From positions 558,001 through 622,000 of the forward strand of contig JAKMXF010000044.1 in assembly GCA_024704765.1 (NCBI GenBank): DNA of 64,000 nt, written 5' to 3'. The translations under genes were made by a program, and so were the position numbers. This DNA comes from Oopsacas minuta. Its lineage: Eukaryota; Animalia; Porifera. The notes under the pieces were generated by a model. The model saw only the letters and a program-made list of their open reading frames with translations, was not told the DNA's origin and did no database searches. This document shows positions 43,532 through 60,730 of the stretch, piece by piece (position 1 is the first letter of the stretch; each line of letters starts with the position of its first letter).

Positions 43532-46500
43532 TCATACTGTGTAGTCGTTTTGAGTTGAAGTATCCGTAGGGGATTCTTTTTCCATCGCCAAGTCAACTGT
43601 AATATCTTTTTCATCTTTTTCATCTATCTCTGGCAAATATGCCATATTTACGTTAGCAACATGATCATAGATCGCATTAGGAATTGCTGGAAGTTGATAA
43701 AGTTGCGGATTAGTGTGTGAGGTTATTTGACTTCTATTCTTCTTCCTCTTCACAACACAACAAACAATTAGTACTGTCATTATGAAAAAGAGAATTAAGA
43801 GAATTATCATGACGGCTATACCTACAATTAAAATGTAGGATGAATATTGATTGAGTAGGCTTGCACTCTGCAGAACTTGATTTGTAAGATCAGCTGTAGT
43901 GGAACTGGAAGCTGTTGATTGAGTAATGTTGTTGTTGATGACAACAGGAGATGTTGCGGTTGTGGCGTCATTTGATTTGAAAAAATGGTAGATTGTTGAA
44001 GAGATTATTTGAATTGAAAAGGGGATCTGGAATTCCACTCTAATACTGTAATTTACATTTGTAATTAACTGAGTTATTTCATATTGCATATTTATAGTTG
44101 TACCAGCGAGAACTTGGTAATTTGAAAATCCCAAATAGACTGAATATTCTATGTCTGTGTAACTCGAACTTGCTTCCAACAAATCCCATAAAACGAGTAT
44201 AGAACTTTCACTTGAAGCTTCTGTGCTCAAATTTATAATCTTTTGGGTGGATTCTAAGGATTGATAATTTGTGTAACACCAATAGGGAGATACCACAGTT
44301 GCCATGGGAATGATATTCAGTTCCCATTCCAACGGGATCTCTACGGGGATTCCTATTCCCACGTAAACCCTGGGAGATGCAAAAATGATTGGACGATGTA
44401 CGACGTCCGAACGTCCGTTCGGAATCTAGCAGTCCGATTAACATGAAATTGGTATACACATTTTGTGTCGGAGACTTGCATCTCGGGTATGAATTTTGTT
44501 TCACATCTTTTTGGTGATTAATAATATTTCACACCTTTCTTTGTAAATTCAAAACAAGCTAGAGATTAGGTTTCAACATATTGTCAGGGTATTTGTGTGC
44601 GTAGAGTCCGATTTGGAGATTTTCAGAGCCTGAAAGTAAATTACTATTTTGACATTCCAAATTTATACCTACATGATTTATATTATCAATTTATCATATG
44701 ATTAATCATATTTTCACCACTTTACGACAAATCAATTGTATTGCGTAGAAATATGACCAGATGCCTCAACTGCATTCCTAGTCTATAGGCTTGACATTTG
44801 TATTAATAATTAATTAGGTTGAAAACAAATACATGGATAAATATTCAAATTTGATAAATTAATGGCTGTTAATAGCTATAATAATCTTACTTGTTAGACA
44901 CGAATACCGTATTTCCCTGAATAACCGTCGGGGGGGCGCTTATTTGTTTCATAGAATTTTTTCATTTAAATATTTTTACAATATTTGAAAATACAAAATA
45001 TTTTAGGAAACTAATTTTCCTAAAATGTTGCATAGTCAAATGAGACCTAAATTTCATCAAAGGAATTCTTCGAGGGGTGGTGATAATTTTATTCACAAGT
45101 TTTGGAGGCTTTTTCTTGCCTTCGGCGCTTATTTAGGGAAATACGGTAATCATATGATAAATGTAGATATAAATTTGGAAATGTCATTATGTCAATATTT
45201 GAATCTACAAACACAAATACACCTAACAGTTGAAACGAATCTCTAGCATCATTTTGAAATATCAAAAACGTATCAATATATGATTTTAATTAATAATATG
45301 ATAAATCATGTAATATAATTCAAAAATTCACATATTGGAATCCACATAGTCGATTACCCTTGACTAACAGCTAAAACCAAATCTCTAACAAGATCTTGAA
45401 ATATATGCAAAAAAGGTGTGATAATACCATGAATCATATGATAAACCTGTGACTTAGTATTTTTCCAGCTCTGAAAACCTTAAAATCCAACTCTAAGCAT
45501 CCAATTACCCCTAAGAACATGTTGAAAACTATTCTCTAGGATTCTTTAGAATTTAGATAGAAATTGTGAATATATGACCAGTAAATCATAAAACCTGTAA
45601 CAAATTTCATTTTAGAAAATTCATACTCGAAATGCAAATCTCCGGCCTCGCACCTGGAATAGCTCGATAATACAAAATGTTATATATTCTAGAAAGTAAT
45701 ATTACGAACCAGCTGATGAAATTTTCATCTGAATAGCCAGTGTCTCTTCTCCATCCCAATTTGTAACATAGAACTTGTACAATCCTTCATCATATTGATA
45801 GAAAATTAGAAAAGTGATAGAGTTTTGTGTGACACTAGTGNNNNNNNNNNNNNNNNNNNNNNNNNNNNNNNNNNNNNNNNNNNNNNNNNNNNNATTGATA
45901 GAAAATTAGAAAAGTGATAGAGTTATGTGTGACACTAGTGTCATCTGGTTTCTGCCATCTCCCAAACAGATTAGAACTCAGAACTACATTCTGTGTCAGT
46001 ACAGTGACATCAGCTGTATTGACATCAGGAGCCAGGAGAGAGAATGAATTGATTGATCCATGATTCAATGTAATTAGAGGTGGACCTGTGTTCAATAAAA
46101 TTTTAGGAAAAACACAAATTTGTCTGGTTTTCAGCATTTCCTACTTTTGTCATTGCAAAACGTTCAGAGCTATATTCTTGGTCTATTTACTACTTCGATA
46201 TTATAACAAACCTTGGATAAATAGTCCCACACTCAGAATGTTGTTATCAGATTCTATATCGAAACATTCCATTGTTTGATTGTTTGTAAGAATAAGAGTG
46301 TTTCTTAATGAGAATACATCAAGTGGGTTAGAGTAAAATCCAATCCTATCCTTCCTCCTCCAGTATATGTTGGATAGCTGGATTAGACTGTTATTAGTAT
46401 TGCAGAATAGAAATATATTCTCTTCATCTACTTCTATAATGTATGTGTAGTTCTCTGAATCTATGGCTTCTAAAGGATGCAAAATATTATACGCAGTTTG

Positions 46501-49500
46501 AAAGTTACAACTATACTACTATGAATTACATATTAGTGGCATTGTTATTGTTTAGACCTGTCTCATTGTAGAAAGCTTCAGTTGTATTAATCAATGGATT
46601 AGTATTACCTACTTACCAGTATACAAAGTAGTATCCAACATTCTAACAGTATGAGTTCTAGTCATTCCTTGATTAGTGACTTCACAGCTGTAGTATCCTG
46701 GTTGATTACTGTACACATACAGAGTACTAATACCTGTAATAGCATCATTAGCTGTAGGCGGGAGGTTAACTTGTGTACCAGTTGGATCTACATAGCTCCA
46801 TACAGGTTCTGATGTGGTCTTATCTTCTGCAACACAGTAGAGAGTAGTGTCTGTTATTAGAATTGTACCTTCTTCTAGACTGATGTATGTATCGGAGTTG
46901 ATTTGCTGTCCAAAGGAGCTCTCTATAATAACCAAAAACAGGGAATAGATGAATGTGTCCGACATGAACAGATATCCTTTCTATGTTTGTGCCAGTTATC
47001 CATGTGATACTGTATATTGAATTATTTTTCACAGCCATCATTATCACAGATACAATATAGTTCTTTAAACTTTGGATGAATATTTATTTGGCGATAATGC
47101 AACTCATTTATACAAAATTCCCTCTGATACATATACTTGGTTGCCTGAATCTGATAATTGATTGCGAAATACCTTATTTGTCTACTTAGCAAGTTATCAT
47201 GGTCATCTTTCATGGTTTATGTCCGTTTAACATTGTTACATACAATGGAAGCCTCTTTATCGGGACAGCTCAGAAGTCAATGTATTGTCCTGATTATCCG
47301 AGTCCCGAATAAGCGGCTTCCACTGTAATAAGTGAATACACATATTGGTATTACCTTAGCAGGCTATGGCATTACAAATGTAGGTATAATCGACTGATTG
47401 GAAAAAATTGTGCAATTTTCACATTTTTGGAATATGTTACTATGATTGTTCAAATTCATATACGTATAATGTGCGAGTAATACATTTAGTCAAAAGTGTA
47501 CCAGTTTGATGCTATCATAAATTATAGGATATTCTAATTATATTCATTGCTATACATCGCTGTCCTTGTTCGAATTTCAGACACTATCATTGCCCTAACA
47601 TATAGAATGTTATGGTAGAGACTTTGTTTTAACGAAAATGATCCTACTACAGAATTGATCCGGGGGGGACCATTTTCGTCAAATTTAACGAAAGTGGTCC
47701 CCTAATGCTTATAACAATGTATTGTGCAATGAATTTATGTTATATCATTGTGGTATGAAATCACATAATGCTATTCATTATAATCGTAATACGACACAAT
47801 TGGTGATATCTTANNNNNNNNNNNNNNNNNNNNNNNNNNNNNNNNNNNNNNNNNNNNNNNNNNNNNNNNNNNNNNNNNNNNNNNNNNNNNNNNNNNNNNN
47901 NNNNNNNNNNNNNNNNNNNNNNNNNNNNNNNNNNNNNNNNNNNNNNNNNNNNNNNNNNNNNNNNNNNNNNNNNNNNNNNNNNNNNNNNNNNNNNNNNNNN
48001 NNNNNNNNNNNNNNNNNNNNNNNNNNNNNNNNNNNNNNNNNNNNNNNNNNNNNNNNACACAATTGGTGATATCTTATCAGATTCGTAATACGACACAATT
48101 GGTGATATCTTATCAGATTCGTAATACGACACAATTGGTGACATCTTATCAGATTCGTAATACGACACAATTGGTGATATCTTATCAGATTCGTAATACG
48201 ACACAATTGGTGATATCTTATCAGATTCGTAATACCACATAATTGGTGATGTTTCACTTTATTGAGTGATATGGAGCCTGTAATGGTTATATTTCGTGTA
48301 GTGGTGAGTAAGTATACTGTAATAGTTTACAGAAGCATAAAAGCTTTGTCAGTAGCTAAAAAATACAGTGTCTCATAAAATACAATTCCTTTACACAGCA
48401 GTATGGACTCTATCGAGTACGAAACAATTTCAAATTACCTAGATTCAAAATCATACCCTGTACATTCTACTAAGGAACAGAAGAGGATCATTCGCAAGAA
48501 AGCTGAGAGGTACGAGTTAGTGGCAGGAAAACATTTTAGATCCTTAGGAGAATGTCAGTTATTGGTTATCAGACGCAATGAGTTGGAGGAAATTTTCAAA
48601 GAGATTCATGATAATTCTCACCAATGTGCTAGATACACATGTACATAGCAAAAGACCGATATCATTAGCCCAGTATGTACAGAGATATTGAAACTTATGT
48701 CACTACATGTGTTCGCTGTCAAAAGAACCAATCAAGCTTAAAAAGTCCTACTCCTCCTCTGAAACCTTTACCAATCATTACTAAGGCATGATACCGTGTA
48801 GGAGTGGACCTAACAGGTCCGCTAATCGAATAAAATAGCTACAAACATATTTTGAGCATGATTGATCATTTCACCAGGTGGATAGAAACCCGTCCACCCA
48901 AATCTAAAAAAGCCACGGAGGTTGCAAGGGGAATCTACTAGATATATTGTAGACAGGGAGCACCCGTTCGAATAATTACAGATAATGGAACTGAATTCAA
49001 GAATAATATTAGTCGCGCATCTATGAAACTTATAATACCAAGCTAATCTTTCTACTCCTTACCATCCTCAGACAAATGGGTTAGTTGAGTCGTCACTTTA
49101 GTTAAGTCGTTAGAAGAAAAGAATGAAAACTGGTCACTTTTCCTAAAAGAGATTACATTCTCTATCAATATTAGACCAAGAGCAACAACAATTTTCTCAG
49201 CTTTTGAGTTGATCCATGGATCTCGAAAAGCTCGACTCCCTACCGAAGCACAAAACCAGGACTATCAGCATCCAGAAGGCAGTATCCTAGATCAGTGGGG
49301 TGGAGAGCACCAGTTTGAAAAATTAATAGATTTCATGCAAGAAGCCCATGAGTCCAATAGTCAGAAAGCTGGAGAACAGCTATTGCATTCACTAAACCTG
49401 ATAAAGCAGCAGTTTGACAAGAAATTGAACCCAGCCTCATCCAGGAAACTTGAGATCGGGGATAATGTATTGATTGAGAATGGGTAAAAAGGGCCGAAAG

Positions 49501-52500
49501 TTACAGGATAAATAGATTGGTCCATACCCTGTGACTACAGTGAATCGTAGTAATGTTCAGATTCTCCAAATACAGCTACTAGATGTGTGAAGAGATCAAA
49601 AGTGAAACTTTACAGAATACCCAAAAAAGACATACATGCAGTACCAAACAAATATCAGTATTTAGATTGCCAAAGTGATGAGAAAAATATCCAACAAGAA
49701 ATATCAGGTGAAGATATCATGATTCCATCGTCTCCTTTTACTGGGGCCGAAGAGTCAACGTTTGAAACCAATGTGACACGAAAATCACGAGAAGAAGTAC
49801 TCGAATTTCTCAATTCAATGAACGATCGCATAATAGAATCAATTAAGGGGAATAACCCACTTAATGAATTCCATCGAAAACTTGATAATAGACGGGATTT
49901 TTCCTTTAAGAATCTACTCGAATGGGGGGGGCCAAGAACATTTTCGTCTACTAAGATTCCTGAAACGAGATTGATGACTTTTGACACAAGTCAAGAGGTT
50001 ACTCGAATACTAGTTCAATTGTATTTGGAAATTTTTGAAATCAAAATACCTTGCTCCAAAATACTAAAGAAAACTTTAAGTTTTCCACAAAGTGGCAACA
50101 AAAAGCATGGATTATACTACAAAGGTTCTATATCCGGTTTTATCTGAGATGATGATAAACACTCTCAAATCTGAAAAGGAGTTATCCATGTCTCACCTCT
50201 CATTACAAGCACATTTCCAACTGACAACTCCATAGAAGATTTCTGTGTTACCTAGGGTGGCTATGTTCATGGAATTGAATTAATAATACATGCCCTATGG
50301 AGAACTTCATTACATTCTTATTCAAAGTGTTCGCGTATGCGATATCAACGACACAATTTCGGTACCACACGGAGATGATTTGTTGATTGGATTTACTATC
50401 TCTACGGGGGTACATTTTTCTATGAGAGTTAAATATAATAGTATTTGGTACTCTTATGATGGGATGGAAAGACCAAAATTAAACAAACTTGAAGATAAAG
50501 AAATTAACCTTATAGGCCGTGTAAATAGCAATAATTACGTTTTACAAAAATTACAAAAATAATTCTTAAACATTTAATAATTCATTAAATGAAACATCAC
50601 CAATTGTGTGGTATTACAAATCTGATGAGATATCACCAATTGTGTCGTATTACGAATCTGATAAGATATCACCAATTGTGTCGTATTACGAATCTGATAA
50701 GATATCACCAATTGTGTGGTATTACAAATCTGAAGATATCACCAATTGTGTGGTATTACAAATCTGATAAGATATCACCAATTGTGTCGTATTGCGAATC
50801 TGATAAGATATCACCAATTGTGTCGTATTACGATTATAATGAATAGCATTATGTGATTTCATACCACAATGATATAACATAAATTCATTGCACAATACAT
50901 TGTTATAAGCATTAGGGGACCACTTTCGTTAAATTTGACGAAAATGATCCAACCGGGTCAATTCACTATGGGGAATCATTTTCGTGAAAAGTAGGATTTA
51001 CCAGTTATACTAATGGAGTATGATGATTCTAATAATGATATTTTCAAGAACGTATTGTGAATAGTCTTTCATTCCTATTTAGGTGACAAGTAAACAAATA
51101 TCTTATTAGTCTCAGAAATGTGATTCCTTACCCATAATTGAGATATAAATCTGAATAGCCAGTGTCTCTTCTCCATCCCAATTTGTAACATAGAACTTGT
51201 ACAATCCTTCATCATATTGATAGAAAATTAGAAAAGTGATAGAGTTATGTGTGACACTAGTGTCATCTGGTTTCTGCCACCTCCCAAACAGATTAGAACT
51301 CAGAACTACATTCTGTGTCAGTACAGTGACATCAGCTGTATTGACATCAGGAGCCAGGAGAGAGAATGAATTGATTGATCCATGATTCAATGTAATTAGA
51401 GGTGGACCTGTGTTCAATAAAATTTTAGGAAAACACAAATTTGTCTGGTTTTCAGCATTTCCTACTTTATTTGTCATTGAAAACGTTCAGAGCTATATTC
51501 TTGGTCTATTTACTACTTCGATATTATAACAAACCTTGGATAAATAGTCCCACACTCAGAATGTTGTTATCAGATTCTATATCGAAACATTCCATTGTTT
51601 GATTGTTTGTAAGAATAAGAGTGTTTCTTAATGAGAATACATCAAGTGGGTTAGAGTAAAATCCAATCCTATCCTTCCTCCTCCAGTATATGTTGGATAG
51701 CTGGATTAGACTGTTATTAGTATTGCAGAATAGAAATATATTCTCTTCATCTACTTCTATAATGTATGTGTAGTTCTCTGAATCTATGGCTTCTAAAGGA
51801 TGCAAAATATTATACGCAGTTTGAAAGTTACAACTATACTACTATGAATTACATATTAGTGGCATTGTTATTGTTTAGACCTGTCTCATTGTAGAAAGCT
51901 TCAGTTGTATTAATCAATGGATTAGTATTACCTACTTACCAGTATACAAAGTAGTATCCAACATTCTAACAGTATGAGTTCTAGTCATTCCTTGATTAGT
52001 GACTTCACAGCTGTAGTATCCTGGTTGATTACTGTACACATACAGAGTACTAATACCTGTAATAGCATCATTAGCTGTAGGCGGGAGGTTAACTTGTGTA
52101 CCAGTTGGATCTACATAGCTCCATACAGGTTCTGATGTGGTCTTATCTTCTGCAACACAGTAGAGAGTAGTGTCTGTTATTAGAATTGTACCTTCTTCTA
52201 GACTGATGTATGTATCGGAGTTGATTTGCTGTCCAAAGGAGCTCTCTAAAATAACCAAAACAGGGATTGGATGAATGTGTCCGACATGAACAGATATCCG
52301 TTATCCATGCGATACTGAATATTGAATTATTTTTCACAGACATTATTATTTTGCAGATACAGCATTTGGTATTTTATAGAAAGTCCTCTGATACATACGT
52401 ATACCAGAGGCTGTTCAGCAAGTTTCACGACCATCTTTCATATAGTTTAATCTCTTTTAAAATTTTCTGGCATCACGATATATTATCGTTTAGGAATTCA

Positions 52501-55500
52501 AAATTCTGCAATTTTCACCTTTTGTGCATCTCCTATAGGGAGATGCACTAATGGCTTGGACTATTTGCAACGTCCGTATGTTCGTCCGTGCGGTCGTGCG
52601 AATTCTGGCAGTCCGATTCACATGAAAATTGGTACACATATACATTTGTATCGAAGATTTGCACCCAGGGTATGAACTTTTTCTAAAGTGAATATGTCAC
52701 ATCCTTTTGCACATATTTCTAATTGGTGCTAGAGATTTCTTTCCATAAGGTAGCCACGAGAGTAATTGCAGGATAATTAATTGGAATTTATCCATAGGAT
52801 TTGAAGATAGAATCTGAGTTGCAGCGGTTCGGGAATTTCATGCACCCTTCCAAATCGATAAATTAAACCTGGTCAATTCGTGTTCAGCCGCACTAAGATT
52901 TTAGCAAGTTCTGGCGGACCATTTGTCTCAGCATTAAATAGTTGATTTACTATATTAGTACATATGTATATATTTTGTATATACAGTGAAGTGTCCGAAA
53001 ACGGACATTCCGAAAAGCGTACAACTCCATGCAACGGACACACCTCGTGGCACGGATTGAATCTGCCAAGTATGTAGTTAATACTTACTCAGTCTCCGAG
53101 AAGCGGGACAATTCTTTACAACGGATAGAAACCATGTCCCCTACGTGTCCGTTATTCAGAGACTCCACTGTACACACAATTTAACACAGGGACTTAAATA
53201 TATTTATTGCGCTACCGCATGTCGCGAGCAAGCGAAGCACCCTCGTACATTGTAATATTAGTATTTGTTTTCGAATTCTCATAATGATGCTAGTATGTCC
53301 TTAGTCCTTACCCATAATTGAGATGTATAGCTGAATAGCCAGTGTCTCTTCTCCATCCCAATTTGTAACATAGAACTTGTACAATCCTTCATCATATTGA
53401 TAGAAAATTAGAAAAGTGATAGAGTTATGTGTGACACTAGTGTCATCTGGTTTCTGCCATCTCCCAAACAGATTAGAACTCAGAACTACATTCTGTGTCA
53501 GTACAGTGACATCAGCTGTATTGACATCAGGAGCCAGGAGAGAGAATGAATTGATTGATCCATGATTCAATGTAATTAGAGGTGGACCTGATAGAATATT
53601 TATATATTGTCAACATTTATCAGTAAATTCGATATCAATGGTCGAAAATCATTTGTTACAATTAACAAATGTTCGAAAGTTATTGAAATAGGTACACAGT
53701 TAACCGACATCTCAGAATTCCTCTATTTTAATTCGCTAGACATTATTGTTATAAAGTTATCAATGATACCTTGAAGAAGGAGTCCAATACTAACAAAAGT
53801 GTTTCCGAGGTTTGTTTCCAAACATTCCAAGGTAATATTACTTGAAGATGAAATATAATACGTTAGCGAAAATATATCAAGCGGGTTGGGGAAGATTCCA
53901 GGTAGATGATCCCTCATCCAATGAATATTAGTTAGTTGTACTGAGCTATCAGTTGGTGTATACAGAAGATAAATATCCTCACTATCAATGCCAATAGTGT
54001 ACGTGTAGCTAAATGAATTCACAACTTCTAGAAAATGGGATTTTACAATTATAGTATTGATAAAATCCTGGCAAATGATAATTGAATGCAACATATATCT
54101 ACCTGTATATGAATGTATATTGAGAATCCCTACAGTATAAATACGACCAACCCCTCCATTCTCAGTGACATCACAGCTGTAGTAGCCTGGCTGAGTAGTG
54201 TACACTTGTATAGTACTAACTCCTGTACTAGAATCAGTTGTAGCAGTGAGATCAGTTCTGATACCAGCTAGATCTACATAACTCCACATCACTTCTGGTG
54301 TGTTCATGTTCTCTGTGACACAGTAGAGAGTAGTATCTGTTATTAGGATAGCATTGTCTGATAGTGATGATGGTGTGGAAGCAATTATTTCTCCAAATGT
54401 GTTCACTAAGGAAATATTGTTATACATGAATGTATGCTAAGTAAATGTGAATCATATTTCAAGGATCTATTCAGATTTGTAAGAAATCTAAAGTAATGAG
54501 TTGATATATGAGTAACAATCAATTTTCAGAAAGATCATTGTAATGTTCAAGAGTTATGTTTATACAATACAAATTATAATTATCTAACTATACTCTTACC
54601 GTGAGTACTACAGAAGTAGCACGTCAGAATGGGTGTGCATTCAAGATCATTCCAATATGTATTTCCACGAGTGTATACACAATCTTCATCACCAGAGTTA
54701 TTGGGTTCACCAGGGGTCCAATTCCTATATGTACTATCACTACCATCAGCCCAAATAAATGTCCCTTCAGCATTTAGGTCATTTAGTCCTATCCAACAAC
54801 TGGTTGAACCAGATGCTGTGCTATACATCAATGTATTCTCTTCTGTGGATGTCACTGTAGCTAGGTCGTAACCACTCACAACACACTGTAGTCTAGCATC
54901 TGCCCAGTTAGTACCAGTGCTAGTGAAATAACTGAAACATGTCCCATCATTTGTTACTACATCACAACCGGTTGTTGGCACTACAGTTTCAACATGAATA
55001 ACAGTATTACAGGAAAATTATTTCCATGCACCATTCCATTTATCACGACAGGACAACAGACAACAATTTGATAGAAACTTACCTGTATACTCGTTAGTAT
55101 CTGTCATTATTGCTGTATACGTTCTACTAGTTCCTCCATCCTCAGTGACATCACAGCTGTAGTAACCTGGCTGAGTAGTGTACACTTGTATAGTACTAAC
55201 TCCTGTACTAGAATCAGTTGTAGCAGTGAGATCAGTTCTGATACCAGCTAGATCTACATAACTCCACATCACTTCTGGTGTGTTCATATTCTCTGTGACA
55301 CAGTAGAGAGTAGTATCTGTTATTAGGACAGCATTGTCTGATAGTGATGATGGTGTGGAAGCAATTATTTCTCCAAATGTGTTCACTAAGGAAATATTGT
55401 AATATATGAATGTACGTATGCTATGGGAATGTGAATCATATTTCAAGGATTGTACAGATTTCTAAGAAATCTAAAGTTATACGTTTCTATAAGAATAAGA

Positions 55501-58500
55501 ATCAATTTTCAGAAAGATAATTGTAATGTTTCAAGAGCTATGTTTATACAATACAAAGTATATTTATCTTACTATACTCTTACCGTGAGTACTACAGAAG
55601 TAGCACATCAGAAGGTTTGTGCATCTAAGATCATTCCATTTTGGATTTCCAAAAGTCTGTACACAATCTTCATTACCATTGCTATTGGGTTCCCCAGGGG
55701 CCCAATTCCTATATGCACTATCACTACCATCAGCCCAAATATATGTCCCTTCAGCATTTATGTCATTTAGTCCTATCCAACACCTAACAGTTGAATCAGT
55801 TAATGTACCATACATCAATGTATTCTCTTCTGTGGATGTCACTGTAGCTAGGTCGTAACCACTCACAACACACTGTAGTCTAGCATCTGCCCAGTTAGTA
55901 CCAGTGCTAGTGAAATAACTGAAACATGTCCCATCATTTGTTACTACATCACAACCGGTTGTTGGCACTACAGTTTCAACATGAATAACAGTATTACAGG
56001 AAAATTATTTCCATGCACCATTCCATTTATCACGACAGGACAACAGACAACAATTTGATAGAAACTTACCTGTATACTCGTTAGTATCTGTCATTATTGC
56101 TGTATACGTTCTACTAGTTCCTCCATCCTCAGTGACATCACAGCTGTAGTAACCTGGCTGAGTAGTGTACACTTGTATAGTACTAACTCCTGTACTAGAA
56201 TCAGTTGTAGCAGTGAGATCAGTTCTGATACCAGCTAGATCTACATAACTCCACATCACTTCTGGTGTGTTCATATTCTCTGTGACACAGTAGAGAGTAG
56301 TATCTGTTATTAGGACAGCATTGTCTGATAGTGATGATGGTGTGGAAGCAATTATTTCTCCAAATGTGTTCACTAAGGAAATATTGTAATATATAAATGT
56401 ATGCTAAGTAAATGTGAATCATATTTCAAGGATCTATTCAGATTTGTAAGAAATCTAAAGTAATGAGTTGATATATGAGTAACAATCAATTTTCAGAAAG
56501 ATCATTGTAATGTTCAAGAGTTATGTTTATACAATACAAATTATAATTATCTAACTATACTCTTACCGTGAGTACTACAGAAGTAGCACGTCAGAATGGG
56601 TGTGCATTCAAGATCATTCCAATATGTATTTCCATGAGTGTGTACACAATCTTCATCACCAGAGTTATTGGGTTCACCAGGGGTCCAATTCCTATATGTA
56701 CTATCACTACCATCAGCCCAAATAAATGTCCCTTCAGCATTTAGGTCATTTAGTCCTATCCAACAACTGGTTGAACCAGATGCTGTGCTATACATCAATG
56801 TATTCTCTTCTGTGGATGTCACTGTAGCTAGGTCGTAACCACTCACAAGACACTGTAGTCTAGCATCTGCCCAGTTCACACCAGTGCTAGTGAAATAACT
56901 GAAACATGTCCTTTCATTTGTTATTGCATCACAACCGGTTGTTGGTACTACATTTGTAACATGCTATAAATGAATACATTCGGTGGATAAATGTTGGCCA
57001 CAATGCGAGGTACTTTACCCGTTTAAGCGACTTAAGTGCAGTGCTTGCCTATCTCGGTGGAATATAATTACAATATGTGCCGACAACTTGGTCTATTAAT
57101 TTAATTTGTTTAAAAAGTGACACTATTAATTGGAGCCACCAGAGACGTCAGGTTTAATTCCAATATACATAGTGCTTCCTATTAATTGTGTCACTTTTTA
57201 AACAAATTGAATTTATTAGACTAATCTGTCGGCACAGGTTGTAATTTTACATTTTTCTTCGCTCCGCTCGGACTTCAAATCCATCAACAATATATTTACA
57301 TTTTACTTTGATCATCCAGTCCATATAATGTTTAATTTTGTTTGCAATAATTGTCAGCTGACTAAATAACATTAATAGAAGGGAATACTAGAGAAGATTT
57401 CATCGGTACAAATTCAAGAGTGTCAAATTCGGGATCAGCGTATTGAATTACCCCCTTTTGCTGTTTGGAACAATCTTCTACGTATTAACAGAAATTGGCC
57501 AAACAAAAGTGGGACGAAATATCGGACTTTCTAAAATTATATTGTTCTACGAACTGCGAAGTAGAACTCATTAATTCATGATTAATTGTTATTTAACGAT
57601 CTTGAAACATAATATCCTTGCCCCAACTAAAATCCCTAGACATTTTGACCCTATTTCTGGCCGCCTGGACAAATAACGAAATCTCTGGACGTTTGTAAGT
57701 ATGAGATCTCCATGTATATATCCATGGATATTGTGGATATTTATTTCAAAGTTGTACTTTGAAAAATATTCCACACTTGAGGGCTATATACAATAATTAG
57801 CAATAAATACCATTTCTTTTCATATAATCGTTGAGAACTCAAACTAACAGATTTATCATAACAATGCCATGTAATCCCCCTTCACGTAAGTTCTCATTGA
57901 CAATCAACTTCACAAATTTATCTATGGAATTCCATTAAGTCAGTCGCGACGTTATTATTTGAAGATTCTGAGATAAGTCTGCCATCTACATAGATGTATG
58001 GGGATCCCACAACAAAAATCATGCGTATGTGAGGTAGGTTGAAAGCAATCTATCTCATTGAGAAATTGAAACACTCCGTACCTCTCTTGTGGATGTTGTT
58101 ACAAAACATTTGTGTGGTACAATTTGACCTATGGAAAATGGATAAACAGGAGTGGTATGAGCACAGTACAAGCCACCAGGAAATCTGTAGCAATGAGTAT
58201 AGGCCCTAGACTTTTGGCATCTACGTCTACCCAACACTAACAAGCCTCAGGCTTTAGAACAATCCTTCAATATCCATGGATATCCTTGGATATCTATGTA
58301 AATGGCCTTGATATATATGGATATGGAGTGGATGTGATTTTTATTTCCACGGTGAGCCTGTGACTTTCCAAATTATCAAATAGTTTTTATAGCATCAGAA
58401 TTTCAGTTACGGTTGGTTCATATTGGTCACTATATATAGCTGATCCAAAACTAGTGGCGTAGCTTGGGTACTCATTAGATTGTTAAATAATATTTTGCAA

Positions 58501-60730
58501 CTCAGGGATATTTGTTTTTGTCCTTTCAAGGGGGCATGCCTCCCTGAACCCGTGTTGATACCGCAATGCACCAGAACCGTCTGATTTTGGGCTCTGGGAT
58601 CTGAGAAATATTTAAAAATATTCAATATTATTGGTCCCTTACTGTAGTTCAAGTTCTATCCTAAAGTCCTATAAATAGAATTACGAATAATTATCCTGCA
58701 ATTACCCCTGTCAAACTTTTGAATCGAAATCTCTAGAATTAATCTGAAATCTGTGTATAAATATGATTGATCATATGTTAAATCACTAAGTGAGAGATTT
58801 GAAAATGTCAAAATTCGTATCTACATACTCGATTATCCCTGACTAGCAGCTGTAACGAATCTCTAGATGATTTGAAAATATGGAAATATGTGTGAAAATA
58901 TGGCACATCATGTAAGATATAGATTTTAAAATGTGAAATTTGAGGTCTACATACTCGATTACCTCTGACTAGAAGTTGAAATGAAATCTCTAGCATCATT
59001 TTGAAATATTACCAAAAGGTGTGAAAACAGAATTAATCATATGATAAATCTGCGAATTAGTTACTTTCAGTTCTGAAAATCTCAAAATCGGATCATATAC
59101 ACCCAATTACCCATGGCAACAAACTGAAACTTAGTCTCTAGCATGTTTTTTGGTTTTACGAAGAAAGGTGTAAAAATATGATTAATCAACAAAAGGTGTG
59201 AAATATTCACTTTAGAAGAAATTCATACCCGAAGTGCAAATCTCCGACCCAAAACGTATATGTATACCAATTTTTATGTAAATCTGACTGTTAGATTTCG
59301 CACAAAAGCGAAGACAGAAGGACTTACAGACGTCGCACATGGTCCTTGCTATTAGGGCATCTCCCTATAGGAGCTGCACTAAAAATCAAAAAATTATAGC
59401 CAACAATTCGCCCAATATCACTTACTAATTATGATTGATTACGATAGGACTACAAATGATGATAAATAGACACCCATTGGAATTAGCAAGTATCGGAAAT
59501 GCACTTAGGCAAAACGCATTTGTCCTGCAGCACATAAGTACGTAAGAATCAATACTGTGTAGTGTATATTTAGCAGATGCAGTGCTCACGCTCACTTAAG
59601 ACCTCTATACAAAAATCCTCTAGAAAACATTGCAATGGACTCCCTATTATGAGAAATTTTACACGAACAACAACTAAGATACAAACATACCTGCATACTC
59701 GTTAGTATCTGTCATTATTGCTGTATACGTTCTACTAGTTCCTCCATCCTCAGTGACATCACAGCTGTAGTAACCTGGCTGAGTAGTGTACACTTGTATA
59801 GTACTAACTCCTGTACTAGAATCAGTTGTAGCAGTGAGATCAGTTCTGATACCAGCTAGATCTACATAACTCCACATCACTTCTGGTGTGTTCATATTCT
59901 CTGTGACACAGTAGAGAGTAGTATCTGTTATTAGGACAGCATTGTCTGATAGTGATGATGGTGTGGAAGCAATTATTTCTCCAAATGTGTTCACTAAGGA
60001 AATATTGTAATATATGAATGTACGTATGCTATGGGAATGTGAATCATATTTCAAGGATTGTACAGATTTCTAAGAAATCTAAAGTTATACGTTTCTATAA
60101 GAATAAGAATCAATTTTCAGAAAGATAATTGTAATGTTTCAAGAGCTATGTTTATACAATACAAAGTATATTTATCTTACTATACTCTTACCGTGAGTAC
60201 TACAGAAGTAGCACATCAGAAGGTTTGTGCATCTAAGATCATTCCATTTTGGATTTCCAAAAGTCTGTACACAATCTTCATTACCATTGCTATTGGGTTC
60301 CCCAGGGGCCCAATTCCTATATGCACTATCACTACCATCAGCCCAAATATATGTCCCTTCAGCATTTATGTCATTTAGTCCTATCCAACACCTAACAGTT
60401 GAATCAGTTAATGTACCATACATCAATGTATTCTCTTCTGTGGATGTCACTGTAGCTAGGTCGTAGCCACTTACAACACACTGTTGTCTAGCATCTGCCC
60501 AGTTAACACCAGAACTTGTGAAATACCTGAAACATGTCCTTTTGTTAGAAATCGCGTTACAACCGCTTGTAGGCACTACAACACCCGGGACATTTGTTAG
60601 TGGTAATCTCAACATTAAATATTTAACGGTCAATGGACACAAAATTATACATACCTTGTGAATTTACTAGAGTATACAACTGAAGCAAAAAAATCAACAA
60701 TTTGAAACCGATGTATTTCATGGAGCTCAT
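43532..60730 (-). CDS. Large type-I membrane receptor (~1,900 aa if all exons are used): SP, 4x[CTL+Ig], Ig, Ig, 2x[Ig-Ig-Ig], FN3, S/T stalk, TM, Tyr tail. Exons 60730-60655, 60575-60192, 59993-59691, 56947-56567, 56372-56070, 55967-55584, 55385-55083, 54980-54600, 54405-54103, 54027-53770, 53587-53312, 52245-51940, 51792-51535, 51407-51132, 46922-46617, 46469-46212, 46085-(gap, broken), 44253-43532
   Basis: Signal exon MSSMKYIGFKLLIFLLQLYTLVNSQ. CTL exons with WIGL, EPN and WND. Ig exons TTLYC..W..PGYYSC. Last exon FN3-like, then ILIVGIAVMIILLILFFIMTVLIVCCVV and KRKK. All internal exons are phase 1-1. Joining them into one transcript is inferred. Confidence 0.72.
44400..44760 (+). mobile_element. 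Helentron/DINE-1-like non-autonomous repeat; other copies ~52520-52740, 59200-59385
   Basis: (cgtc)n-like motif, catgaaattggtatac, and palindrome gtgcatctcctatagggagatgcac at 52522-52546. The class assignment is an inference. Confidence 0.5.
44907..45146. mobile_element. Tc1/pogo-type MITE
   Basis: ta|ccgtatttccctgaata...tatttagggaaatacgg|ta. Confidence 0.7.
45841..45893. other. Assembly gap (N run) inside a duplicated Ig exon
   Basis: 53 Ns; the same exon sequence occurs on both sides. Confidence 0.98.
47243..47325. mobile_element. Tc1/pogo-type MITE
   Basis: ta|caatggaagcc...ggcttccactg|ta. Confidence 0.65.
47785..48255. repeat. 36-bp tandem array in the left TIR; includes N gap 47814-48056
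   Basis: Unit acacaattggtgatatcttatcagattcgtaatacg. Confidence 0.9.
48403..50562 (+). pseudogene. Integrase/transposase pseudogene (zinc-binding region, DDE core, GPY motif, C-terminal extension)
   Basis: ISNYLDSKSYP..KR, CVRCQK, RVGVDLTGP, IDHFTRW, IITDNGTEF, STPYHPQTNGLVE and K*IGPYPV, read across several stops and frameshifts. Confidence 0.82.
50595..50830. repeat. 36-bp tandem array in the right TIR (reverse complement of the left)
   Basis: About 6.5 copies of gatatcaccaattgtgtcgtattacgaatctgataa. Confidence 0.92.
52984..53170. mobile_element. Tc1/pogo-type MITE
   Basis: ta|cagtgaagtgtccg...gactccactg|ta. Confidence 0.65.

Follow-up and report, generated by a model that had tools for sequence, protein, structure and literature searches.

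The window analysed here is a 64,000 nucleotide (nt) stretch of the genome of the glass sponge Oopsacas minuta (GenBank assembly GCA_024704765.1, contig JAKMXF010000044.1, positions 558,001 to 622,000 of the forward strand), taken from an assembly of 61.46 Mb in 365 contigs. It is AT-rich and surrounds a gene of 18 exons that runs on the minus strand from 60730 to 43532 and is predicted to encode a modular receptor made of C-type lectin (CTL) and immunoglobulin (Ig) domains. The exons (Table 1) were delimited by stop-free stretches and AG/GT borders. In minus-strand order they encode a signal peptide, four pairs of a lectin and an Ig domain, two further Ig-like cassettes (B1 and C1), two A'-B-C triplets and a terminal exon. 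A first-pass annotation, made from the sequence letters, had described a signal exon, four lectin and Ig pairs, Ig cassettes with a duplicated triplet and a single exon for a fibronectin type III (FN3) domain, stalk, transmembrane (TM) segment and tail, and all of these were recovered on the minus strand where it had placed them. It was also right that the internal exons are 258-384 nt long, multiples of 3 and in phase 1-1, the sole exception being C3 as assembled (376 nt, or 276 nt when collapsed). Introns of 75-200 nt separate most of the cassettes. The intron between IgA4 and B1 (54028-54102, 75 nt) is open in frame, and its retention would add 25 residues and no stop.

Table 1. Exons of the lectin-Ig gene, in minus-strand order, and the transposon in one of its introns (positions are those of the window)
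Feature	Position	Strand	Length (nt)	Description
Exon 1	60730-60655	minus	76	ATG and 25-codon signal peptide MSSMKYIGFKLLIFLLQLYTLVNSQ; donor CAAG/GTATGT; ends in phase 1; residues 1-25 of KAI6660002.1
CTL1	60575-60192	minus	384	Lectin type a; phase 1-1; EPN and WND; Lectin_C 68 bits; residues 27-153 of KAI6660002.1
IgA1	59993-59691	minus	303	Ig exon; phase 1-1; Ig_3 sub-threshold on the exon alone; residues 155-254 of KAI6660002.1
CTL2	56947-56567	minus	381	Lectin type b; phase 1-1; Lectin_C 64 bits
IgA2	56372-56070	minus	303	Ig exon; protein identical to IgA3
CTL3	55967-55584	minus	384	Lectin type a; PDB relatives CD23, DC-SIGN, SP-D and mannose receptor family; 3' half nucleotide-identical to CTL1
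IgA3	55385-55083	minus	303	Ig exon; best PDB matches MuSK and hemolin Ig domains, E 5e-4
CTL4	54980-54600	minus	381	Lectin type b; Lectin_C 64 bits
IgA4	54405-54103	minus	303	Ig exon; opens triplet 1
B1	54027-53770	minus	258	Ig-like cassette B; 39% identical to B2
C1	53587-53312	minus	276	Ig-like cassette C without disulfide; DNA 98.6% identical to C2
A'2	52245-51940	minus	306	Ig exon; Ig_3 sub-threshold
B2	51792-51535	minus	258	Ig-like cassette B; conserved Cys...Trp...Cys pattern
C2	51407-51132	minus	276	Ig-like cassette C
A'3	46922-46617	minus	306	Ig exon; copy of A'2
B3	46469-46212	minus	258	Copy of B2
C3	46085-45710	minus	376	Copy of cassette C; 276 nt collapsed; own last 7 codons; weak donor GCTG/GTTCGT
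Last exon	44253-43532	minus		Predicted FN3, Ser/Thr-rich stalk, TM and tail; stop at 43534-43532; acceptor CCTTAG/AATCC; phase 1
Transposon	47627-50990			In the C2-to-A'3 intron; inverted ends with 36-nt tandem repeats; holds gap 2

The gene has a public record, LOD99_14343, whose product (KAI6660002.1, referred to as P0086 in our searches) is a 1900 aa "hypothetical protein" that was recovered by a search seeded with a close paralog. As the exons of the window were searched one by one, whole-protein statements rest on this public protein. Exact exon-by-exon matching showed that KAI6660002.1 holds each exon translation, in order, with one junction residue between neighbours. The sole mismatch was in C3, which contains the first of two assembly gaps (gap 1, 45841-45893). 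The 47 nt on either side of this gap (45794-45840 and 45894-45940) are identical at 46 of 47 positions, indicating that the contig ends overlap and were left unmerged. The gap and the 47-nt duplicate together place a surplus of 100 nt in C3 and shift it out of frame. Once the overlapping ends are merged, the exon has 276 nt and an intact frame, and its sequence is nearly identical to those of C1 and C2. The public model lacks 17 residues because it splices around the gap. LOD99_14343 is a real and previously annotated gene, and an assembly gap has corrupted one exon of its public model. The full product is predicted to be approximately 1,917 residues long, with four C-type lectin and 12 Ig-like domains on a membrane stalk. 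The proposal in the first-pass annotation that the exons form a single receptor with alternating lectin and Ig domains was borne out by the public model, which joins exactly these exons, including the last at 44253-43532. The joining of the same exons in this independent model supports the view that they belong to one gene encoding a type I membrane protein.

In a single-exon Pfam scan, the Lectin_C (PF00059) scores of CTL1, CTL2 and CTL4 (Table 1) compare with a curated cut-off of 22.6 bits, and the whole of KAI6660002.1 has four Lectin_C domains (219 bits). The closest solved relatives found in a PDB search with a lectin exon were CD23 (E 7e-22), DC-SIGN, SP-D and the mannose receptor family. 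The EPN and WND motifs reported at first pass were present in all four of the lectin domains, together with a Glu that lies 8 residues after the Glu of EPN and 12 residues before WND (type a, EPNSNGNEDCVQTFGNPKWND; type b, EPNNSGDEDCVHTHGNTYWND). This arrangement, EPN...E...WND, is the Ca2+ site-2 ligand set that goes with binding of the mannose/N-acetylglucosamine (GlcNAc)/fucose type, the spacing rule being that of rat MBP-A. The sequences therefore support the presence, in all four domains, of the Ca2+ site-2 set of mannose-type carbohydrate-recognition domains, and the sugar specificity is predicted by motif.

The A exons share a Cys...Trp...YxC pattern (LYCV...W...YYSC). Single A exons were sub-threshold for Ig_3, which scored 37.3 bits on KAI6660002.1 against a cut-off of 30, and I-set scored 37.9 bits on the paralog P0087. 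By sequence, namely the Pfam result on the whole protein and the PDB matches to MuSK and hemolin, the A exons are assigned to the Ig class. Single B and C exons had no Pfam match. AlphaFold models of B2 and C2 were built with alignments of 33 (B) and 34 (C) genomic paralogs and compared with known structures using an exhaustive structural aligner. The C2 model (predicted local distance difference test score, pLDDT, 95.5) matched KIT D1 with Z 9.7 and a root-mean-square deviation of 1.6 A over 72 residues, and nearly all of its top 50 matches were Ig domains. The B2 model (pLDDT 84) also had Ig-like matches, the best with Z 6.2. Foldseek returned no match at E <= 0.001 for either cassette, those for B being at E >= 0.01. 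Cassette C is thus Ig-like by its predicted fold, in keeping with the first-pass description of the further cassettes as Ig, and cassette B is, with weaker support, an Ig-like sandwich.

The FN3 part of the last exon was below the Pfam cut-off as a single sequence (fn3, E 0.0037) and matched Tenascin-R with E 0.009. A profile built from seven terminal exons matched two FN3 arrays, P0014 (E 7e-23) and P0029 (E 2e-13), both of which are FN3 by Pfam, and this family-level match supports a predicted FN3 domain at the start of the exon. It is followed by a Ser/Thr-rich stretch, a hydrophobic TM segment of about 29 residues, the sequence KRKKNR and a 66-residue Tyr-rich tail. Three tail motifs, NPxL[Y/F], NE[T/I]Y and NxxAY[L/S]PE, recur in conserved form in O. 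minuta paralogs and in the transcripts of another glass sponge, Vazella pourtalesii. NPxY and the immunoreceptor tyrosine-based inhibitory and activation motifs (ITIM and ITAM) were considered as identities for these and rejected, as the residues are off consensus: the second Tyr precedes LPE and NPQLY is NPxxY. Some family members, among them P0080 and P0017, end a few residues past the TM segment (e.g. RRHIQKSNM) and have none of the tail Tyr motifs, while others are full-tailed. The occurrence of tail-less and full-tailed members is reminiscent of signalling/non-signalling receptor pairs.

The gene belongs to a large family. Single-exon searches of the assembly, which give lower bounds, found at least 150 lectin, 109 Ig-A, 101 C and 43 B exon matches, as well as at least 7 full-length tail exons and approximately 10 partial ones; a genome-wide search for paralogs had been proposed at first pass. 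The terminal exon is 42-52% identical to six full-length paralogous exons in the genome, and signal peptides similar to that of exon 1 are found at the N-terminus of P0081 and P0018. The family exons are clustered on contigs that include C343, C14, C16, C111, C11, C277, C312, C345 and C99, amongst others. Some clusters (C16/C312, C11/C277 and C111:348-358 kb/C111:454-464 kb/C356) occur twice, with identical or near-identical scores. Such doubling, which reflects either recent segmental duplication or haplotigs left uncollapsed, would make the counts for the family too high. A haplotig origin of the whole locus in the window was rejected, as the tail, B and C exons have no second near-identical copy on other contigs.

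The domain order of the public O. minuta models was read with hidden Markov models of each exon type (L, lectin; A, B and C, Ig cassettes; F, FN3). The window gene is read as L-A-L-A-L-A-L-A-B-C-A-B-C-A-B-C-F, P0085 as (L-A)x8-B-C-C-F, P0081 as L-A-L-A-L-A-A-L-A-B-C-(A-B-C)x5-F and P0001 as L-A-B-C-F. The common order is a signal peptide, (lectin-IgA)n, (A-B-C)m, FN3 and TM, with one phase 1-1 exon per domain and a homologous terminal exon, and the window gene conforms to it. Paralogs have from one to eight lectin-Ig pairs and from one to six A-B-C triplets, so the copy-number change suggested in the first-pass annotation is found on an evolutionary scale. Other public models of the family include KAI6661271.1, KAI6650284.1, KAI6647376.1 and KAI6658464.1. 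The automatic names given to paralogs include 'low affinity IgE Fc receptor', 'lactose-binding lectin' and 'macrophage mannose receptor 1', the last because of the similarity of the lectins to the mannose receptor family.

Two paralogs have other architectures. In P0088 (named 'Macrophage mannose receptor 1', 3731 aa), the unit lectin-lectin-B-C occurs six times, (L-L-B-C)x6, with no A-type Ig exons; this different order suggests that the cassettes recombine into more than one architecture. In the closest paralog, KAI6661354.1 (P0087; C14:94500-99240), lectin and Ig-A cassettes that are 80-89% identical in protein sequence to those of the window gene sit on a GPS motif and a secretin-type seven-transmembrane (7TM) body (7tm_2, 108 bits) resembling that of an adhesion G-protein-coupled receptor (GPCR). 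Either genuine shuffling of exons or an erroneously fused gene model could account for this join.

Beyond O. minuta, the terminal-exon profile matched only 60 proteins among 1.84 billion, and the named ones were O. minuta models and V. pourtalesii Trinity transcripts. In the V. pourtalesii mRNAs, the junctions of B with C and of C with the tail fall at the same points. Two tail-bearing genes, one with C-A'-B...C-tail and the other with B-C-tail, lie on a contig that was assembled from a metagenome and belongs to another organism (ENA ERZ25069837, ctg27964, 35% GC); their cassettes are 65-73% identical in protein and keep the order of those in the window gene. The family is very large and has so far been found only in glass sponges.

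Within the window gene, the repeat units are 97-100% identical, introns included, and the lectin exons are mosaics. The 3' halves of CTL2 and CTL4 differ by two changes, both of which alter an amino acid, while the 5' halves group otherwise than the 3' halves, CTL3 falling with CTL4. When the 3' halves of types a and b were compared, a pairwise count gave 20-21 nonsynonymous changes against 1 synonymous change (dN 0.15, dS 0.026; binomial P ~0.04), and many of the differences between the two types are located between EPN and WND. The mosaicism and the nonsynonymous excess point to unequal crossing-over or gene conversion in the lectin exons, together with selection on the sugar-binding part. 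The family probably evolves by tandem duplication and by unequal crossing-over or gene conversion of single-exon cassettes, with amino-acid diversification of the half of the lectin that would bind the sugar. As read from these comparisons, the diversification is over evolutionary time, not within one animal.

We consider it reasonably probable that a single gene occupies the locus and encodes a glycan receptor of about 1,917 residues with type I membrane topology. The analysis shows the exon structure, the domain identities and the topology, as well as the size of the family and its variable cassette numbers, whereas we infer the type of sugar, the source of the ligand and the signalling. The signal peptide would direct the receptor into the secretory pathway. 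At its membrane-distal end, four C-type lectin domains that fall into two sequence types, each domain with a full EPN...E...WND site, would be spaced by Ig domains and held off the membrane by three A-B-C Ig-like triplets, one FN3 domain and the Ser/Thr-rich stalk. The lectins would bind mannose/GlcNAc/fucose-type glycans in a Ca2+-dependent and multivalent manner on foreign particles or cells, or on neighbouring sponge tissue, and the short tail with its three conserved motifs may pass the event on via tyrosine-based adaptor binding or uptake. The family to which the receptor belongs probably recognises foreign or neighbouring surfaces.

Several points weigh against this account. The sugar specificity is read from the motif only, and AVL of Aphrocallistes vastus, the one characterised glass-sponge C-type lectin, is reported to bind galactose (PMC11278381). 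The tail motifs match no canonical ITAM, ITIM or NPxY consensus, and for cassette B the structural match is a weak one (Z 6.2). The O. minuta public models were made with BRAKER/Augustus and RNA-seq hints (PMC10280926), and such a model is no proof of each junction. Finally, as both gaps lie within repeats, the number of A-B-C triplets is uncertain, and no part of the assembly is less certain.

The same protein may instead have its chief role between sponge and sponge, in tissue adhesion, aggregation or self/non-self recognition. It would then bind glycans or partner receptors of glass-sponge tissue and not of microbes, with a large polymorphic family standing in for aggregation factors; we regard this as a tentative possibility. 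Hexactinellids lack the aggregation-factor genes of demosponges yet show allorecognition (PMC5400394), and the reported aggregation factor of A. vastus is a C-type lectin (Gundacker et al. 2001, cited in PMC5400394). Where the choice is between microbial and sponge glycans as ligands, these facts make a reading in terms of adhesion or allorecognition attractive. The family is also very large, clustered and variable in cassette number, the putative sugar-binding half of the lectins appears to be under amino-acid diversification, and the Ig and FN3 ectodomain resembles that of cell adhesion molecules. The identical features suit microbial pattern recognition equally well. A more specific proposal is that this glass-sponge lectin-Ig family, rather than any homologue of the aggregation factors, is the system for self/non-self and tissue-fusion recognition, its specificity being renewed by cassette recombination and by selection on the sugar-binding loops, with long-tailed and near tail-less members acting as signalling and non-signalling partners. 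This proposal is speculative, and we think it decidedly unlikely in that full form.

A different concern is that triplet 3 (A'3-B3-C3, 45.7-47.0 kb) is a mis-scaffolded or allelic piece, so that there are two triplets, or that there are in truth more than three, some of them lost to collapse during assembly. The piece 45894-47813 is bounded by both gaps, and 45894-46977 matches 51216-52299 at 99.1% identity through exons and introns alike. At gap 1 the overlap of the contig ends has a single mismatch, and the identity of at least 98.6% among the C exons is of a kind that classically causes an assembly to break. However, the last 7 codons of C3 are its own, as is the intron between it and the last exon, and the upstream flank of A'3 is unique, parting from that of A'2 after some 80 nt and running on into the end of the transposon. 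As the tail, B and C exons have no second near-identical copy on another contig and tandem A-B-C triplets, up to six of them, are the norm in paralogs, an incorrect triplet number is considered fairly unlikely.

Gap 2 (47814-48056) is in the left terminal repeat of this transposon and touches no coding sequence because the transposon sits in the C2-to-A'3 intron. Inverted matches were found between 47627-47813 and 50990-50804 and between 48057-48265 and 50787-50582, giving ends about 400 nt long, and there are at least 20 dispersed copies in the genome with 65-89% identity. The plus-strand open reading frames of the element (48403-50562) had no Pfam match, and a guess that it is a Ginger-type integrase transposon was dropped for want of support. 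Sequences in the IgA1-to-CTL2 intron (58897-59297) and the C3-to-last-exon intron (44423-45644) share a repeat that is 74-77% identical and partly inverted, and this is probably another transposon family.

It was also considered that the phase 1-1 cassettes might be skipped combinatorially within one animal to generate a repertoire of isoforms, a somatic diversification like that of Dscam or the FREPs. All of the internal exons are symmetric, so that any skip stays in frame, and most introns between them are short. Phase 1-1 symmetry is, however, a general rule for animal extracellular modules and no special property of this gene. The IgA1, IgA2 and IgA3 proteins are identical or nearly so and there are just two lectin types; with cassettes this similar, skipping would mostly alter length and valency, not specificity. 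When the tail exon was used in a word search, the only match was one ENA protein; no transcript-derived fragment of the window gene appeared, and hence no isoform evidence. We consider this mechanism improbable, and the analogy to Dscam and the FREPs drawn in the first-pass annotation is weak, three of the four Ig-A exons being near-identical and the lectins being of two types.

It is highly improbable that the exons make up two or more genes, such as a secreted signal-CTL1-IgA1 product upstream of the IgA1-to-CTL2 intron (59690-56948) and a separate gene downstream, because, although this intron is 2.7 kb, unusually long for the gene and filled with repeats, IgA1 has a good phase-1 donor (GCAG/GTATGT), CTL2 lacks both a signal peptide and a start codon, and the public model and all of the long paralogs place the signal, (L-A)n, triplets and TM in one protein.

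The single glycan receptor that we favour shares features with several known systems. Like the window gene, members of the mannose receptor family (MRC1, MRC2/Endo180, DEC-205/LY75, PLA2R and the chicken yolk-sac IgY receptor) are type I proteins with several C-type lectin domains, a single TM and a short tail with tyrosine-based motifs, and they are among the best solved-structure sequence matches of the sponge lectin exon. In contrast to that family, which has 8-10 contiguous C-type lectin-like domains, the predicted sponge protein has an Ig domain after each lectin, with Ig-like triplets and FN3 coming next. It has no ricin-type Cys-rich or fibronectin type II domain (only Lectin_C and Ig families were found by Pfam), and its tail is without a motif of the FxNxxY type. 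Similarity is confined to the lectin domain, where identity to animal MRC1-like proteins is 24-30%. AVL is, like the window gene product, a glass-sponge C-type lectin; it is Ca2+-dependent and has been proposed as an aggregation factor. AVL is described as small, with one lectin domain, a hydrophobic N-terminus and binding to galactose, whereas the window gene encodes four EPN domains in about 1,900 residues, together with Ig and FN3 domains.

Dscam1 of insects, like the window gene, combines Ig and FN3 domains in an ectodomain carried by one TM segment and prompts the idea of cassette exons as a source of diversity, and Dscam Ig domains are among the fold matches of the modelled cassette C. 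Dscam1 has no lectin domains, and its diversity comes from mutually exclusive choice among large arrays of divergent exons, whereas the exons of the window gene are near-identical and constitutive in the public model. The VIgL proteins of Biomphalaria glabrata (FREPs and the C-type-lectin-related CREPs) are a diversified invertebrate immune family that combines an Ig superfamily part with a lectin domain, as in the window gene. Unlike its product, the snail proteins are secreted and have one or two Ig domains followed by one lectin, with no alternation, TM or FN3. FREPs also diversify somatically, whereas the diversification read from the window gene is over evolutionary time. The Alr allorecognition genes of Hydractinia, also from an early-branching animal, form a large family that is likewise clustered and encodes type I proteins in which Ig-like domains stand in tandem and the tail has tyrosine motifs; they differ in having no lectin domains.

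A literature search found no paper describing the lectin-Ig receptor family, and lectins were mentioned in neither of two glass-sponge genome papers (one of them PMC10280926). Taken singly, the lectin, Ig and FN3 parts are of ordinary kinds. No paper that we found describes the head in which lectin and Ig domains alternate, the stalk of A-B-C triplets or the family's size. The family offers a clean natural example of exon-cassette shuffling, the same lectin-Ig cassettes being carried by a single-pass stalk here and, in the closest paralog, apparently by an adhesion-GPCR body. In glass sponges, which are syncytial, the lectin and Ig cassettes of this compact 61-Mb genome, well over 100 in number, are concrete candidates for recognising microbes or other sponge tissue. 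They are proposed for such a role because the cassette numbers vary between paralogs, the half of the lectin predicted to bind sugar shows an excess of amino-acid changes, and the putative signalling tail is conserved.

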